Of a DNA stretch of 64,000 nucleotides, positions 8,181 through 58,105 are shown in pieces. Positions within the stretch are counted from its first letter, which is position 1. Each line of letters begins with the position of its first letter. Below the pieces are notes generated by a model, which made no database searches, was not told where the DNA came from, and was given only the letters and a program-made list of their open reading frames with translations. Location of the stretch: NCBI GenBank assembly GCA_964188305.1, contig OZ076893.1. One strand, 5' to 3'. This stretch comes from Podarcis bocagei (lineage: Eukaryota). The position numbers and the translations under genes were made by a program.

Positions 8181-8406
8181 CAGTGTTACCTCGGGTTACA
8201 TATGCTTCAGGTTACAGACTCCGTTAACCCAGAAATATTACCTCGGGTTAAGAACTTTGCTTCAGGATGAGAACTGAAATCTTGCTCCCGCAATGCGGCA
8301 GCAGCAGGAGGCCCCATTAGCTAAAGTGGTGCTTCAGGTTAAGAACAGTTTCAGGTTAAGAACGGACCTCCGGAACAAATTAAGTACTTAACCCGAGGTA
8401 CCACTG
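8181..8406 (+). mobile_element. Tc1/mariner-superfamily (Tigger/pogo-like) MITE, copy A
   Basis: TIRs CAGTG(G/T)TACCTCGGGTTA...TAACCCGAGGTACCACTG, TA on both sides, internal CTTCAGGTTA repeats. Confidence 0.9.
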
Positions 8407-10035: not shown

Positions 10036-10523
10036 TACTGAGCTAAGTGGACCAATCACCTGACAAGGTATTGTCCATATGGTGAAGGGGATTGGAAGGA
10101 TTTCTGTGAAGAACTGTCAAATGACAGTTCTGTAACTAGTATATTTATGAATCCAAGGTAAGAGTAAATAATTCGTTTTAATTCTTTGTCTGAATATACC
10201 TTTGGATATATTGAGGAATGAATCATATTTAGCTGACACGCAAACACAGCTGCTGACTCTAGAGAGCCAGAGCCAGTTTGAAGCATTAAGAAGGAAAACA
10301 TATTGGCTTAATCCAACATTCTATCCATCCAAGTGTCACTTCCATAATACTGATTTGGCATTAGATTGTTGTCATCATTACTTTATGATTAGGTCAACAG
10401 CAGAGTGGAGAACACAAATGACAGCTTTAACAACAACAACAACAAAAAGTCTAACTAGAAAACAAAATCAGTACTCATATAAACAATATGGTTAATTTCA
10501 AATGATTTTAAAGCACATTTATA

Positions 10524-10765
10524 CAGTGGTACCTCAGGTTACATACACTTCAGGTTACATACACTTCAGGTTACAGACTCCGCTAACCCAGAAATAGTGC
10601 TTCAGGTTAAGAACTTTGCTTCAGGATGAGAACAGAAATCGGGCTCTGGCGGAGCGGCAGCAGCAGGAGGCCCCATTAGCTAAAGTGGTGCTTCAGGTTA
10701 AGAACAGTTTCAGGTTAAGTACAGACCTCTGGAACGAATTAAGTACTTAACCCAAGGTACCACTG
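10524..10765 (+). mobile_element. Tigger/pogo-like MITE, copy B
   Basis: Same TIRs and body as copy A, with TA target-site duplication. Confidence 0.9.
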
Positions 10766-11575
10766 TATATGTTTTCTTTTCTATCAAAGGCCTATTCTGA
10801 TATTTTCCTTATTTTGTTTTCCACCAATGAATGATCCAGAATTGTGAAATAATTTTGGCTAGTCCTATTGGTACCTTCCCTGCCTATTACAACCTTTGTA
10901 TGAATGTGGCTACTCAGGGACTACTACTCTCCCCGCCCCCGCCCCCCCCCCCCCAGTTCTGCTAATGACATCAGTGAAATCTGCAAAGGTGGAGGGGGTT
11001 TACGTGTGTGAAAGAACCTTGGAATATTTATACTTATTAATTTTTTGAATGTGTTAATAACAAATTTGTTAATTTGGATTTCAACATGTTTAACTTTGTT
11101 CCTAATTAACAAAACAAAAAAGAAAAAGAAAAAAGAAAAAAGAAAAAAGAGAGGATTAAATGCTCCCATGAGGAATATTGCTTTCAGCTGCATGTGGAAG
11201 GAATCACTCCCATCACTTGACCAAAATAATAAACAGGTTGCGGGGGTGGGGAGGGGAGACAGCATACTAGACTGCCAGAACTACTTCAGGAATATTCACT
11301 ACTTCAGCATAATAAGGCATACCAAGCTAAAACAGACTCTCTTCAAGTACAGTATGAATTATAAATTGCTGCCTGTTTAATCAATTATACTTTAATGCTT
11401 TCAAAGTTGTTTGAATATCCAAGGCTAACAAATGCTAATCTTATACTGGTCTAATAAAATTAGGGTTTCATCTCTCTCTCACCCACACATAATTTTACAT
11501 ACTCTATACTGATAAAAATAACCACAAAGAACAAATATCTAATGCAATAAAAAAAACCCTGCCTTAATTCAATTA

Positions 11576-11946
11576 AAAGGTAAAGGTAAAGGACCCCTGA
11601 CAGTTAGGTCCAGCTGCGGACAACTCTGGGGTTGCAGCGCTTATCTCACTTTACAGGCCGAGGGAGCCAGTGTTTGTCCACAGACAGTTTTTCCGGGCCA
11701 TGTGGCCAGCATGACTAAGCCTCTTCTGGTGAAACCAGAACAGTGCACGGAAATGCTGTTTACCTTCCCGCCAGAGCGGTACCTATTTATCTACTTTCAA
11801 TTTGATGTGCTTTCGAACTGCTAGGTTGGAAGGAGCAGGGACCGAGCAACGGGAGCTCACCCCGTTGTGGGGATTCGAACCGCCGACCTTCTGATTGGCA
11901 AGCCCAAGGCTCAGTGGTGTAGACCACAGCGTCACCTGCGTCTCTT
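11576..11946 (-). mobile_element. Sauria SINE, near full length
   Basis: (AAAGGT)n tail at the left, tRNA-like head with GGTTCGAATCCC B-box on the minus strand, TSD TTAATTCA(A/G)TTA at 11564-11575 and 11947-11958. Confidence 0.9.
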
Positions 11947-14346
11947 TTAATTCAGTTAGCATACATTTTTTTTCCAGCAGGAGGCAAAGGTCCAAGTAGC
12001 TAAGAGGTTTACATACATTTAGCATTTCGACCTGCTTTTTTTCAGAATACAATTCCCCAACAACTGAGCTGCCAACACATGAGAGCTCAGTGGTGCATCT
12101 GCAGAAAGCTCACTTACAGGATGCCTGCAGAGGGAATAGCAAGACATGTGCAAGCATCATAGCCAAGACACCAAGTAACTCCCTCATGAGATCTGCAGGA
12201 GTCATCCAAAAGTGTCTCCTGCCCTCATTCACTTAGAATGAGAATGCAATTCTTCAGTAGTTCTAATACGCTCCGTTTTAAATGTTGCGTATACTTAAAA
12301 AATATGAACATACTGTTTCTCTGGAGAATATTATGATTTCTCCACATTGTAGATTTATGTAACATACCCTTTTAAAGAACCAGGGACTTAAATTCAAGTC
12401 ACAGAATATTTTCTTTTTTTTAAAAAAAGAACAAAACTTTAGCTGAAGTCTTTATTTTCTGCAAGCGCCCATAAAACGAACATTTTAAAATTGAGTTCCT
12501 AGAAATATTTCCTTTGTAAGGCATTGAAATGAAATGCCTGACATCTGTTTCTCATTAAATCCATTAGAGATTGCTTGAAATAATGTACACAGCAATTATC
12601 TGCTAACAATGCTGCATAGTTATTAGCATACTAAGATGCTGCCCTGTGACCCATGAAAGTGAGGGGTACTTGCGTGTACTCATATTTAAGTTGCATTCAT
12701 AAGACCATGTGGGCATGTAATAAATGCTGTAGAATCCTGTGGCTGTTGCTTCCCAGCAAGCTACTAGGCAGACACATGTAGCTGCTGCCGCCAGGTTCAC
12801 GATTCAACTTTTGTCAAGGCACTGCACAAAACTCCTTTTTTGCAGCCATGCACCAAAGGAAGAATTTTGTGTCTGGTGGTAGAAACATCTGCTCATTTGC
12901 CATAGGCTAGGAACCAATACACAGAGTTGCCATTTTTCTTTTTGACAGGGCTACTGTGCATGTCAACATCCTGCTTGTCTTGCCGCCTTAAGGGAATAGG
13001 TGCTCCTCCCACCCTAAAAGCTGGCAAACCTAACTACATATGTAAATGCTGATGTGAATAGGCCCTTTAAGTCCTTTTCTTCCAATAAGCCAATAAATGT
13101 AGCTTAGGTGATTGAGAGCCGCTGAGTAACATACTGCTGTGTTAGGCAGGAGAGAAAAACTGATGAAGTCGGACCTACTTCCCAAATATCTTTGGTCCTG
13201 CCTGTGTCAGCTGACAAAATATGTCCCACTTCCATCGGCTATGGGGTTCCATAAAGTAAACTGATCAGGGCGCTTTCTCCAACCCATATTTCCTGTGCTC
13301 CTCAATGTATTTTCACACATATCCAGTATGTTAATAGATTTGTGAATCATACCGTGCTATAATCTTGACTTTCTAAACAGCAACAGCTTTAATCAAACTA
13401 AGATGTCTTTCTAGTTGGGATTTAAATTCATCCATAAATAAGCCAGTCTTTTTTAATGGGAAAACAGAGTCTACAAAAAAAGTGTGTGTGTGAAGTCAGA
13501 TGAATACTAAATTTTAAAATTGCTTAAGAGGAAGACATGCTTACAAAACCTGTTCTTTGTCACTGATAAATGTTTCACCAAGACTTCTGATCTCCTAAGA
13601 CAAATGCATCATAAATTTATATGGGCATGCTTTAAAAATACAACAGATAAACTAAAGTTAAATTAGACGGATTTCATGGCTAAAATAGCTTAATGTGATT
13701 CAAAATGTATTATTTAGCCAAGAATAATATTTTAGTTATAAAAAAGCAATAGACTGAAATATCTAATTATCTAAAGATAAACAAATACAATTCATGCAAT
13801 ATGTAAAGGGTGCATTTATAATTAATAGTGAACATTGTAATTGCAAGTAAAATCATTTGCATAATTTACAAGTAAATAAATGGATGTTTAATGGTCTTAT
13901 AATAAAATATAAAAGAAGTTATATTGCTTTTGCATCCAATAAAATTAATGCACACTATCCATATGAATGAAAGATGTTGATTTCTGTGTGCATTAATAGA
14001 ATCCGCTTATTTTTAAAATAGAGCTAAAAAGACAGCCATTTAAAAGAAGTGTAACATATGAAGAAACTATTATTATATATGATCAAAAATTCAGCGCCAT
14101 ATTTCAATAACACATATATCAGGCCAGCAGCCATTGCTTTGCAGGTTGCCTGTTACAGTACTTCATCATATCAGTTCTGTATTGAATTTATCTCTCATAT
14201 ATAATTGAAAGCACACTGTCTTCAAACAAAGCTCTTTGTTTCCATACAAGAAGACAAATTGTCCAAAGACCCATGCAGCATACAGACGTACCTCAGAATC
14301 TTGATGAACATAATAAAATAGTATCCACCTATATTACTATGAATAA

Positions 14347-14648
14347 AAAAAGGTAAAAGACCCCTGGATGGTTAAGTCCAGTCAAAGGTGACTATGGGGT
14401 TGCTTTCAGGCTGAGGGAGCCGGCGTTTGTCCACAGGCGGCTTTCTGGGTCATGTGGTCAGCATGACTAAACCACTTCTGGTGCAACAGGACATCGTGAT
14501 GGAAACCAGAGCACTGTGGTCTAAACCACTGAGCCTCTTGGGCTTGCCAATCAGAAGGTCAGTGGTTTGAATCCCTGTGACGGAGTGATCTCTCGGTCAC
14601 CTTTGACTGGACTTAACTGTCCAGGGTGTCCTTTAACTTTTTTATTTT
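14347..14648. mobile_element. Rearranged Sauria SINE with a 3' end at both termini
   Basis: Minus-strand 3' half (14348-14514), plus-strand 5' part (14511-14595), plus-strand 3' end (14596-14643); 13-bp TSD TTACTATGAATAA. Confidence 0.85.
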
Positions 14649-15636
14649 TTACTATGAATAACATGCTAGATAGAGATCTAACCTGATGACTACATGACTG
14701 CTATCCTAGTAAAATTGCTCTTCCTGGTCTGTGTTGACAAGTTCAACCAAAATGCACCCAAAGATAACTATGACTTGTAAACAATGCAGTGCTAAGTTAT
14801 ATACCCCGTCAGCACAATGATGTACATTTCTGAAAAGGAACTTTCCTCCCCACCGCAAAAATGTGTTCCTGTACCTCCTGCTGAGCAGATTTGGGGAGGA
14901 AACAAGAGTACAGAGGATGGGAGTCCTGCTATGCAATCATAAATCCTTGTGCTGCTGGGAACTGCACTGGAAACAAGCCTTGCAGTCCAATGCTTTTATG
15001 TAGCTTTATGAGTCCTGCCAGACTTGGGCATGGAGTGACAGGTGAAGAAGAGGAGGGGGGAGAGGAAGAGGAAATGGCTCTGAGACTGAAGAACAGAGGT
15101 CAGAAGAGGCAGGTACTTCTATCTTCCAGTAAATGGCTGTTCTGGATGGGGAAGCAGGGCTCCTCACTCCCTTCCCAACTCACGGGGACAGAAGAGCACC
15201 AATGGAATCTGGGGAGGGCCTTAATCAATTGTTCAGGGTGCAGGAACCAGTGTTTGAAGTTATTTTTGGGGCAGGGGAGGGGAGCCTGTTCACCCAGGAC
15301 CCAGCAACCTTTTCATCAATTGGAACAGACACATTATCCCCAACACAATGCAGGTCTGCATGATCACAATTCTCACAACACTCTCACAAGGCCCAGGGGG
15401 TTTGTGAGTAAGCCAGCCTTTACATTTAAAAGCTTGAGAGGTCGGTGTGCTGACCCACTGGAATGACCTCATTGCTTCTGTCATCCTTGTCCTGATCTTG
15501 GACTCCCTAAACTTGGGCTGCTGCTTCTATCTAGCCCAGCTAAGATTGCCTTTCCTTCACCTAGCCTGAAAGTTGCGGCTGCTGTGACATTACCGGTGCA
15601 CACCTTTACTCTGCCTCAGTAAAGATATCTTCTGTA

Positions 15637-16309
15637 CAGTGCTACCTCAGGTTACATACGCTTCAGGTTACATACGCTTCAGGTTAAAGACTCCGCTAAC
15701 CCAGAAATAGTGCTTCAGGTTAAGAACTTTGCTTCAGGATGAGAACAGAAATCGGGCTCCGGCGGCACGGCAGCAGCAGGAGGCCCCATTAGCTAAAGTG
15801 GTGCTTCAGGTTAAGAACAGTTTCAGGTTAAGTAAGGACCTCTGGAATGAATGAAGTACTTAGCCCAAGGTACCACTGTATATGTTTTCTTTTCTATCAA
15901 AGGCCTATTCTGATATTTTCCTTATTTTGTTTTCCACCAATGAATGATCCAGAATTGTGAAATAATTTTGGCTAGTGCTATTGGTACCTTCCCTGCCTAT
16001 TACAACCTTTGTATGAATGTGGCTACTCAGGGACTACTACTCTCCCCCCCCCCTGTTCTGCTAATGACATCAGTGAAATCTGCAAAGGTGGAGGGGGTTT
16101 ACGTGTGTGAAAGAACCTTGGAATATTTATACTTATTAATTTTTTGAATGTGTTAATAACAAATTTGTTAATTTGGATTTCAACATGTTTAACTTTGTTC
16201 CTAATTAACAAAACAAAAAAAGAAAAGAAAAAAAGAGAGGATTAAATGCTCCCATGAGGAATATTGCTTTCAGCTGCATGTGGAAGGAATCACTCCCGAG
16301 GTACCACTG
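15637..16309 (+). mobile_element. Composite element: MITE copy C (15637-15878) + duplicated intron DNA (15879-16297) + extra outer TIR end (16295-16309)
   Basis: TA|CAGTG at the left; the middle matches 10766-11211; it ends CCCGAGGTACCACTG|TA. Confidence 0.88.
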
Positions 16310-16829
16310 TACTCTTAAGTTGCTCTAAACAGGAGTCTAGGATAGGATTTTTTTCTTGAAAATTACTCGAGTCATGTTCCCTGCCTCAAGGTACCATTGT
16401 TGCCCTCAAGCAAACCCTTCTCTGCAAATGAGTTCTCGCATTAGGATGCCTTGGAGGCCTGGCCAGCGTTGGAACAAGCCAATGGGGCGCCTGGGGTGGC
16501 GTGTGTCCCGTGCACCCAGGGGGCAGGGCCAGCCGCCCATAGGGCAGGGTGAGCAAGGGCAGGACGCTCCGTGGGGCTGCTGAGGAGTCTGTCTGCCTCC
16601 TCCCACTCAGCTGCCCTACAGCTGAGGGGGAGGTGGTGGACGGACCATTTGGGGTAGGGCAGAGCCTGCAGGCGCCCAAGCCACTGCGTCACTCTCAGGA
16701 GAGACACATGGCTTGGCCCCGCGGTGAGTGCCACCCGGCATTTTGTCACCCCCCTCAGTGGAGACACCCAGGGTGGCCTGCCTCCACCGCACCACCTTTC
16801 CTCTGCTCCTGGGCCCAGGGATTACAAGA

Positions 16830-17295
16830 AAGTCCTAGATCAGGCTCGGTTTGCAAACACTTCATGGAGCTCAGATTCCAAGTGATGCCAATGGCGGCCT
16901 TGGGTGGCCATTACAATAGGGTTCCATATGATGACAGACTCTGCATATGTAGCCAACCACAGGTGGAAAATATCATACATTACTTGCTAATCTGCCCTTT
17001 GTATAGGGATACAAGAGATCGATTCCTGAAACCTTTGCTAATTCCTAGAAGCAGGGACGCTAACAGATTTTTTTATACATAAAGTGGCACTTTATGCTCT
17101 GGCTGCAAGAAAGATAAGAAAGAGAGATGGGCATTATTGTAACAAGTTGTGATGGTGATCTGGAGGCATAACGGAAGTTAAGCTGGGTATGAGATAACAG
17201 ATGACACTTATGAACTCTGATGCCCTTTCTTTAAACACTTGATGCCTTGTATTATGTAATTATTGTTTTATGGCCTTTGGTTAATACAGTAAGCC
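16830..17295 (+). mobile_element. 3' end of a non-LTR retrotransposon (RTE-X-like) with a C-terminal Cys/His motif
   Basis: C-terminus of ORF 16549-17082 reads RLCICSQPQVENIIHYLLICPLYRDTR, typical of a LINE ORF2 zinc knuckle; AT-rich 3'UTR-like tail follows. Confidence 0.65.
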
Positions 17296-19715: not shown

Positions 19716-19941
19716 CAGTGGTAACTCGGGTTACATACGCTTCAGGTTACACACTCCACTAAGCCAGAAATAATGCTTCAGGTTAAGAACTTTGCTTCAG
19801 GATAAGAACAGAAATCGGGCTCCGGCGGCACGGCGGCAGCAGGAAGCCCCATTAGCTAAAGTGGTGTTTCAGGTTAAGAACAGTTTCAGGTTAAGTACGG
19901 ACCTCCGGAACAATTTAAGTACTTAACCAGAGGTACCACTG
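19716..19941 (+). mobile_element. Tigger/pogo-like MITE, copy D
   Basis: Same TIRs and body, TA flanks. Confidence 0.9.
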
Positions 19942-46386: not shown

Positions 46387-46620
46387 CAGTGGTACCTCGG
46401 GTTAAGAACTTAATTTGTTCTGGAGGTCCGTTCTTAACCTGAAACTGTTCTTAACATGAGGTACCACTTTAGTTAATGGGGCCTCCTGCTGCTGCCGCTA
46501 GACAATTTCTGTTCTCATCCCGAAGCAAAGTTCTTAACCCGAGGTACTGTTTCTGGGTTAGTGGCGTCTGTAACCTGAAGCGTATGTAACCTGAAGTGTC
46601 TGTAACCCGAGGTACCACTG
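46387..46620 (-). mobile_element. Tigger/pogo-like MITE, copy E (opposite orientation)
   Basis: TA|CAGTGGTACCTCGGGTTAAG...TAACCCGAGGTACCACTG|TA; body is the reverse complement of copies A-D. Confidence 0.9.
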
Positions 46621-49070: not shown

Positions 49071-49444
49071 CAGTGGTATCTCTGGTTACGAACTTAATTC
49101 GTTCCAGAGGTCCATTCTTAACCTGAAACCGTTCTTAAGCTGAGGTACCACTCAGCTTAATGGGGCCTCCTGCCGCTGCGCTACTGCCAGGTGATTTCTG
49201 TACAGTGGTACCTCTGGTTACGTACTTAATTCATTCCGGAGGTTCGTTCTTAACCTGAAACTGTTCTTAACCTGATTTGCCACTTTAGCTAATGGGGCCT
49301 CCTGCTGCTGCCGCGCCGCTGGCGTGCAATTTCTGTTCTCATTCTGGGGCAAAGTTCTTAACCCGAGGTACTACTTCCAGGTTAGCGGAGTTTGTAACCC
49401 GAAGTGTTTGTAACCCGAGGTGTTTGTAACCCAAGGTACCATTG
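49071..49444 (-). mobile_element. Tigger/pogo-like MITE: half copy (49071-49200) followed directly by a full copy (49203-49444)
   Basis: Two CAGTGGTA starts, each preceded by TA, but only one closing TIR (CCAAGGTACCATTG|TA). Confidence 0.85.
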
Positions 49445-57880: not shown

Positions 57881-58105
57881 CAGTGGTACCTCGGGTTACA
57901 TACACTTCAGGTTACATACGCTTCAGGTTACAGACTCTGCTAACCCAGAAATATTACCTCAGGTTAAGAACTTTGCTTCAGGATGAGAACAGAAATCGTG
58001 CTCCAGTGGTGCAGCGGCAGCAGGAGGCCCCATTAACTAATGTGATGCTTCAGGTTAAGAACAGACCTACAGAATGAATTAAGTTCTTAACCCAAGGTAC
58101 CACTG
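57881..58105 (+). mobile_element. Tigger/pogo-like MITE, copy G
   Basis: Same TIRs and body, TA flanks. Confidence 0.9.

Follow-up and report, generated by a model that had tools for sequence, protein, structure and literature searches.

A MITE in the 64-kb stretch of DNA analysed here (the window) carries three TIRs and a segment of host DNA whose second copy directly follows a sister element upstream. We refer to the three-TIR element as copy C and to the sister element as copy B. Most probably, C is an ordinary MITE that was patched by synthesis templated on B, with an exit through a CCC microhomology, and is a one-off repair scar. The anatomy of the composite, the direction of copying and the younger age of the patch can be read off directly. 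With donor and product 5 kb apart and every junction base assignable, the locus is an unusually legible record of host-DNA capture.

The composite lies on the plus strand at 15637-16309, between a left TA target-site duplication at 15635-15636 (TCTG-TA-CAGTGC...) and its partner at 16310-16311, the right TA being placed by site reading and alignment; the interval 15637-16311 originally proposed is thus the element together with its right TA. Its order is TA|TIR-body-TIR|TA-flank-TIR|TA. The first segment is MITE C's own left TIR and body through CCC (15637-15866), which differs from B at 12 positions. It is followed by a 431-bp templated insert from B (15867-16297) that is about 99% identical to 10754-11211, two repeat-length differences aside, and that comprises an inner right TIR with B's CpG-decayed AAGG (15867-15878), B's TA (15879-15880) and 417 nt of B flank with CCC at the end (15881-16297). 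The last segment is MITE C's own terminal 12 nt (GAGGTACCACTG, 16298-16309), in the consensus state with its CpG intact, whereas that of the inner copy is not. This third perfect TIR tip, reading GAGGTACCACTG-TA-CTCTT, comes directly after 16297. The left end of the composite is complete, and the right end matches the consensus over 12 nt, or over 15 if the shared CCC is included. A repeat search found the two CCC-TIR starts at C separated by 431 nt. For the cargo, predicted to be about 420 bp, we measure 417 nt at C, or 431 nt when the inner TIR tip and TA are counted in, and 444 nt at B.

The donor, MITE B, is a complete, TA-flanked copy of 242 nt on the plus strand (10524-10765), oriented like C and lying 5.1 kb upstream of it, with ends that read CAGTGGTACCTC... 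on the left and ...AAGGTACCACTG on the right. The tract copied from it (10754-11211, plus strand) takes in the final 12 nt of its right TIR, the TA and 444 nt of native flank. This flank starts at 10768; it is unique, rich in A and T, and contains a long C/G-run as well as a (GAAAAA)n run. We aligned 10480-11260 with 15600-16350 and found homology that was unbroken from the TA before the left TIR (10524 at B, 15637 at C) to ...GAATCACTCCC (11211 and 16297), with unrelated outer flanks at the two sites. At C the cargo stops at ...GGAATCACTCCC (16297). Past the CCC, B reads on ATCACTTGACC and C reads GAGGTACCACTG-TA-CTCTT; a reading of the B site found no TIR or TA at 11212 in the flank, which simply runs on. 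In BLAST searches of the 64-kb window the cargo matched at the B and C sites only and the MITE at eight, leaving a single cargo parent in the window at about 99% identity and a length ratio of 417/444 = 0.94. The alignment confirms what had been noticed by eye, namely that B and its 444 bp of right flank (10524-11211) recur at 15637-16297 and that the second copy alone is capped by a TIR and TA, with CCC common to flank and TIR. While the whole of 15637-16297 does recur, the unit that was copied is smaller than this recurrence had implied, covering only the 431 bp at 15867-16297.

Both limits of the copied tract can be assigned from bases that distinguish the two elements. When the 12 differences between B and C were polarised against other family copies, C-private derived bases fell at family-alignment columns 16, 61, 209, 227 and 237, the last of them being position 15863, a G within TTAGCCC. 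Donor-type bases begin at 15867 with the A of AAGG; the inner TIR has AAGG as in B, unlike the outer TIR of C with its consensus GAGG. Since C-private bases extend up to 15863 and the next informative site is B-like, the switch from C to donor lies within the CCC at 15864-15866, and the switch back within that at 16295-16297. The length of the insert is 431 nt whether it is written as 15867-16297 or, equivalently, as 15864-16294. Its removal in silico leaves a 242-nt MITE with TA on both sides and the ending TTAGCCCGAGGTACCACTG, for which the family consensus reads TTAACCCGAGGTACCACTG, and the recipient bases lost at C number zero. Because taking out the insert restores a normal 242-bp TA-flanked MITE with the consensus right end, copying from B to C is supported by parsimony, as a direction that would explain every base and lose nothing, and the ancestor at C was presumably a simple MITE. 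These results uphold the original prediction in its main outline: a resident MITE C with its own TA duplication, a donor consisting of B's right end and flank, entry through the homology between the MITEs, and a CCC microhomology as the exit onto the terminal 12 nt that C already had. The computed chance of at least 3 nt of microhomology at a random junction is about 0.05, which counts in favor of this exit; taken by itself, a 3-nt microhomology is weak evidence.

Divergence between the two sites is uneven. The MITE bodies of B and C differ by 12 substitutions in 227-242 nt (5.0-5.3%), four of which are transitions at present-day CpGs and about three more of which fall at ancestral CpGs. Between the copied tract and its source, 2-4 of 434 sites differ, repeat-length changes apart. 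Two of these patch substitutions are clean, a C/G at 10864/15977 and an A/T at the end of the C-run, and the patch also has one shifted G in the A-rich microsatellite. Slippage, either while the tract was copied or later, is compatible with its two length differences, which are 14 nt in the C/G-run and 13 nt in the (GAAAAA)n run. The contrast between body (12/227) and patch (2-4/434) gave Fisher p = 1e-4 to 9e-4, in keeping with the expectation of about a dozen differences in the bodies and few in the cargo, for which an alignment of the two had been proposed as a check. Without the present-day CpG transitions the comparison of body and patch gave p = 0.004-0.03, and when ancestral-CpG changes were also set aside, about 6 body differences stood against 2-4 in the patch, which is only borderline. 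The case accordingly rests mainly on anatomy, with divergence in support, and both favor a patch younger than either MITE insertion.

Copies B and C belong to a family with eight members in the window. We located copies at 8181-8406, 10524-10765 (B), 15637-15878 (C), 19716-19941 and 57881-58105, and on the minus strand at 46387-46620, 49203-49444 and, as a partial copy, 49071-49201. All seven full copies of the window have TA on both sides. The copies are 225-242 nt long, with a TIR of CAGTGGTACCTCGGGTTA and about 18 nt of pairing, and the longest ORF within the MITE is 44 aa. The TIR 12-mer, at two or fewer mismatches, matched 28 times in the window against 3.8 expected. Family copies differ from one another by 5-17%, with CpG decay, and the family is consequently not young. 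The closest MITE pair of the window is B and C, at 95% identity versus 83-91% for other pairs. At one position C and a further copy, D, both have GGCACGG, where B differs.

A 13-nt motif, TCRGGTTAMRWAC, occurs as 30 exact matches in the window against 0.04 expected, all of them within MITE copies. It is repeated within each MITE (for example across 10534-10722), mostly in direct orientation with one inverted at the right end, and at most MITE ends one TCRGGTTAMRWAC directly adjoins the terminal CAGTGGTACC. The array looks like a set of putative transposase-binding sites. On the basis of the TA duplications and CAGTG termini, the family is placed as a Tc1/mariner-superfamily MITE, Stowaway-like and with a Tigger/pogo-like TIR. 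No autonomous partner encoding a DDE/DDD transposase and having the same ends was found in the 64-kb window. The 16 nt made up of the TA and the 14 nt that open the TIR (TACAGTGGTACCTCGG; for example 10522-10539, and at other left ends) are the same as the TIR of 'Tigger-like MITE_109' from the bug Rhodnius (PMC4678618), a resemblance only, which may reflect convergence or shared ancestry; Rhodnius prolixus is noted for horizontal transfer of transposons (PMC4678618).

The window also contains a second three-TIR arrangement, the F/F2 pair, on the minus strand at 49071-49444. Its order is TA, a full MITE (49444-49203), TA, a 5'-truncated MITE (49201-49071) and TA, the truncated half beginning at about family position 118 (CAGAAATC...). 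The two halves are only 79% alike. We considered F/F2 as a second example with its donor in the window and rejected it, as no copy is near either half (75-87% identity). With halves this dissimilar and neither of them near any other window copy, the arrangement is old, and may represent adjacent insertions or an old repair product.

The most likely course of events at C starts from an ordinary 242-bp TA-flanked family member. A DNA end or nascent strand in its right TIR (...TTAGCCC) would have paired with the 95%-identical B, 5.1 kb upstream, through an entry homology of about 230 nt. Synthesis would then have run over the final 12 bases of B's TIR and over its TA into about 444 nt of unique flank. 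The new strand would have released at ...CACTCCC and rejoined C's own end (GAGGTACCACTG-TA) via the 3-nt CCC. The sequence itself shows the entry through long element homology, the copying of about 458 nt across the donor end into unique flank, the exit at the 3-nt microhomology and the precise rejoining of the 12 nt left at C. As to the enzymology, we infer SDSA finished off by microhomology end joining, or else a template switch at a replication fork (FoSTeS/MMBIR type), two routes that sequence alone does not separate. The original prediction had proposed a break repaired by SDSA on B; its templated copying and microhomology exit stand, and its choice of SDSA is inseparable from a template switch.

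The process probably started from a break of the ordinary sort or from a fork that had stalled. Tc1/mariner excision leaves overhangs of 2-3 nt. A break made by transposase is not indicated, since such cleavage leaves 2-3 nt and not the 12 nt retained at C. Joining catalysed by transposase is excluded, since each junction falls 12 nt inside a TIR and not at a terminus beside a new TA. Alternatively, C may have been excised and repaired from the sister chromatid, the repair changing over partway to B as an ectopic template. Two further ideas were rejected. MITE B as a hairpin or fragile site found no backing, for in single-stranded form the element pairs its termini but gains no stability over shuffles (z = -0.58). 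Patchy conversion of the C body by B was set aside as well, the longest identical runs of 72 and 67 nt being nothing unusual when judged against a rough, uncomputed estimate for 12 differences over 227 nt.

Several other histories could in principle bring the same segments together. A variant of the same mechanism would have the entire interior of C resynthesised from B, for example in gap repair after excision, with the body differences arising later from CpG hypermutability and chance. In agreement with this, B and C are the closest MITE pair (95% versus 83-91%), and CpGs, present or ancestral, account for about half of the sites at which the bodies differ. We nevertheless consider it quite unlikely, because at least six body differences that are not CpG transitions face two clean ones in a tract twice as long, because GGCACGG is common to C and copy D and not to B, and because C-private non-CpG changes crowd up to the junction (columns 227 and 237). 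It is very unlikely that the cargo is instead the normal interior of a longer multi-copy element, TIR-MITE-TIR-cargo-TIR, from which B lost the terminal 12 nt. Local hops are common among cut-and-paste elements, and only 5 kb separates the two copies, but this history requires a deletion in B that ended precisely at the cargo/TIR boundary, where B has neither TA nor TIR at 11212. It also predicts equal divergence in body and cargo, which were observed to be unequal, and no third cargo copy was found among the eight MITE loci of the window.

In an end-bypass transduction, transposase would skip B's right end, use a downstream pseudo-end and move B together with its flank; the parent copy is physically linked to the TE, as this model requires (PMC8277862). 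The capping 12-nt TIR of C is, however, missing from the B flank at 11212, the C body is not the B body (5.3% against less than 1% in the flank copy), and the right junction lies 12 nt inside the TIR at a microhomology and not at a terminus, which makes such a transduction extremely improbable. Equally hard to credit is the reverse direction, with the cargo native to C and gained by B through run-on repair from C. Run-on repair is symmetrical in principle and the window holds no outgroup, but a perfect 12-15-nt TIR and TA would have to occur by chance in the C flank at the point where homology ends, and B would have to have lost its own right TIR. An assembly artefact, in which a chimeric or mis-collapsed stretch put a second copy of the B flank at C, would account for repeat-length differences that resemble sequencing errors. 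It would not account for the clean substitutions between the copies, for a junction that rebuilds a precise TIR at a microhomology, or for distinct MITE bodies with unique outer flanks on both, and we regard it as highly improbable. Segmental duplication is excluded by the capping TIR missing at the donor together with the unequal divergence. Together our results favor an ordinary MITE C patched from B over each of these.

How the patched element relates to Pack-type elements depends on its structure and on its capacity to move. The rules used to define Pack-TIRs ask for 100-5000 bp of non-TE sequence between the ends of one TIR element and for at least 10 bp of both consensus termini (PMC8277862); the composite, with 417 nt of non-MITE DNA, a complete left end and 12-15 nt of the right one, agrees with both. 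For the parent they ask for a unique copy, an identity of 90% or more and a length ratio between 80 and 120% (PMC8277862), against which the one parent in the window has about 99% and 0.94. A further rule asks for no TE within 100 bp of the parent, and here the parent starts 2 nt after MITE B. The purpose of that filter is to weed out segmental duplications (Tan et al. 2021, Nat Commun, PMC8277862). Because the pipeline drops parents with a TE within 100 bp, the configuration at C is missing from the catalogue of Tan et al., whose main text does not mention lizards (PMC8277862). The composite is a member of an already known kind, the animal Pack-TIR formed by gap filling.

The original prediction went further and held that the product could be mobilised whole by the family's transposase, as a Pack-type element. 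This claim fares less well: BLAST found one TIR-capped copy of the composite in the 64 kb, where a mobile element is expected to have at least two with different target-site duplications, and the outer right end, of which 15 nt are kept, has no TCRGGTTAMRWAC, nor does the cargo. TCRGGTTAMRWAC may be needed for transposase binding, and the complete inner end 431 nt away would compete with the outer one for transposase. The divergence of 5-17% among family copies likewise gives no hint of mobility. Mobility of the composite is unsupported, with no sign of movement. We find it unlikely that run-on repair primed by a sister copy is a recurrent, uncatalogued route by which the dense MITEs of this genome take up neighbouring host DNA, of which this three-TIR product would be a newborn and still transposable example.

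The neighbourhood of the composite is repeat-rich non-coding DNA. Searches across the 64-kb window returned no Pfam match among the 20 longest ORFs, no Rfam family and no exon signal, and the host intron named in the original prediction is putative. The G+C content is 0.48-0.50 at 15000-17000 versus about 0.38 elsewhere, and several GC-rich ORFs at 16386-17082 overlap one another and lack Pfam matches. Two ORFs flank C, one of 191 aa 170 bp to the left and one of 177 aa 240 bp to the right. Exact look-ups of four ATG-started ORFs from the cargo or its junctions, word searches with the cargo/B-junction ORF and both flanking ORFs, and a metagenome scan for a 22-mer of the cargo gave no match, negatives of no weight given that the conserved MITE core was equally missing from that collection. 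The 177-aa ORF had no Pfam match; by eye its 3' part (16800-17080, plus strand) reads ...DDRLCICSQPQVENIIHYLLICPLYRDTRDRF..., which we take to resemble the cysteine-histidine tail of LINE ORF2. Between donor and recipient there are two copies of a SINE-like repeat with tRNA-related sequence (11582-11908 and 14334-14661), which share direct and inverted segments at 83-87% over 41-59 nt. A TIR-like 13-mer, CAAGGTACCATTG, followed by TT, is found at 16387-16399, 78 nt to the right of the composite. We rejected it as a MITE relic, since alignment of its flank was at chance, with 69 of 300 shuffles scoring as well. As an apparently single and immobile scar in non-coding DNA, the composite has no evident effect on the host. 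Its broader relevance is to surveys of capture, which have a blind spot in that captures primed by a sister copy go uncounted; MITE-rich genomes should favor such captures.

Among known systems, the Pack-MULE, Pack-CACTA and Pack-TYPE elements of plants are mobile, often multi-copy carriers of gene fragments. The composite resembles them in having host DNA between transposon ends, but it exists in one copy in the window, its cargo is non-coding, and one of its ends is cut to 15 nt without the subterminal motif. The resemblance to end-bypass, or 3' transduction, as in TIR elements, Helitrons and L1, lies in the donor-adjacent flank inside a new composite; here, by contrast, the donor has no capping end, and its element body did not come along with the flank. 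The birth of Tc1/mariner MITEs (Yang et al. 2013, PMC3814204) shares with C the superfamily, gap repair with microhomology joining, possible template switching and junctions that preserve the termini. It differs in that it deletes interior sequence, whereas C gains exterior sequence (PMC3814204).

Closer in mechanism is the abortive gap repair of P elements (Gloor 1991; Nassif 1994, 'Efficient copying of nonhomologous sequences from ectopic sites') and of Ac/Ds (Rubin and Levy 1997), to the extent that these studies are described in PMC8277862 and PMC3814204. In those accounts, as at C, a homologous element copy elsewhere serves as template, adjoining non-homologous DNA is copied, and there is template switching and a microhomology join. 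The P element and Ac/Ds events, as far as those accounts describe them, were experimental or triggered by excision, in contrast to C with its 12 nt of retained end.

The nearest relatives are the Pack-TIRs of animals, which are overwhelmingly single-copy products of transposition-independent gap filling with a cis bias (PMC8277862). Their donor usually lies less than 5 kb away, the median microhomology is 2 bp, only one kind of carrier is commoner than TcMariner, and losses of TE sequence are small (PMC8277862). Consistent with this pattern, the composite has non-TE DNA between the ends of one TIR element, a carrier of the TcMariner superfamily, a donor about 5 kb off on the same chromosome and microhomology at the breakpoint; almost no TE sequence was lost, and the capture came after insertion and is apparently single-copy. 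Where it departs from them is at the donor, which here abuts a sister copy, and in its entry by about 230 nt of element homology. Because entry ran through the element, the patch carries the donor's TIR tip and TA, and the product has three TIRs.
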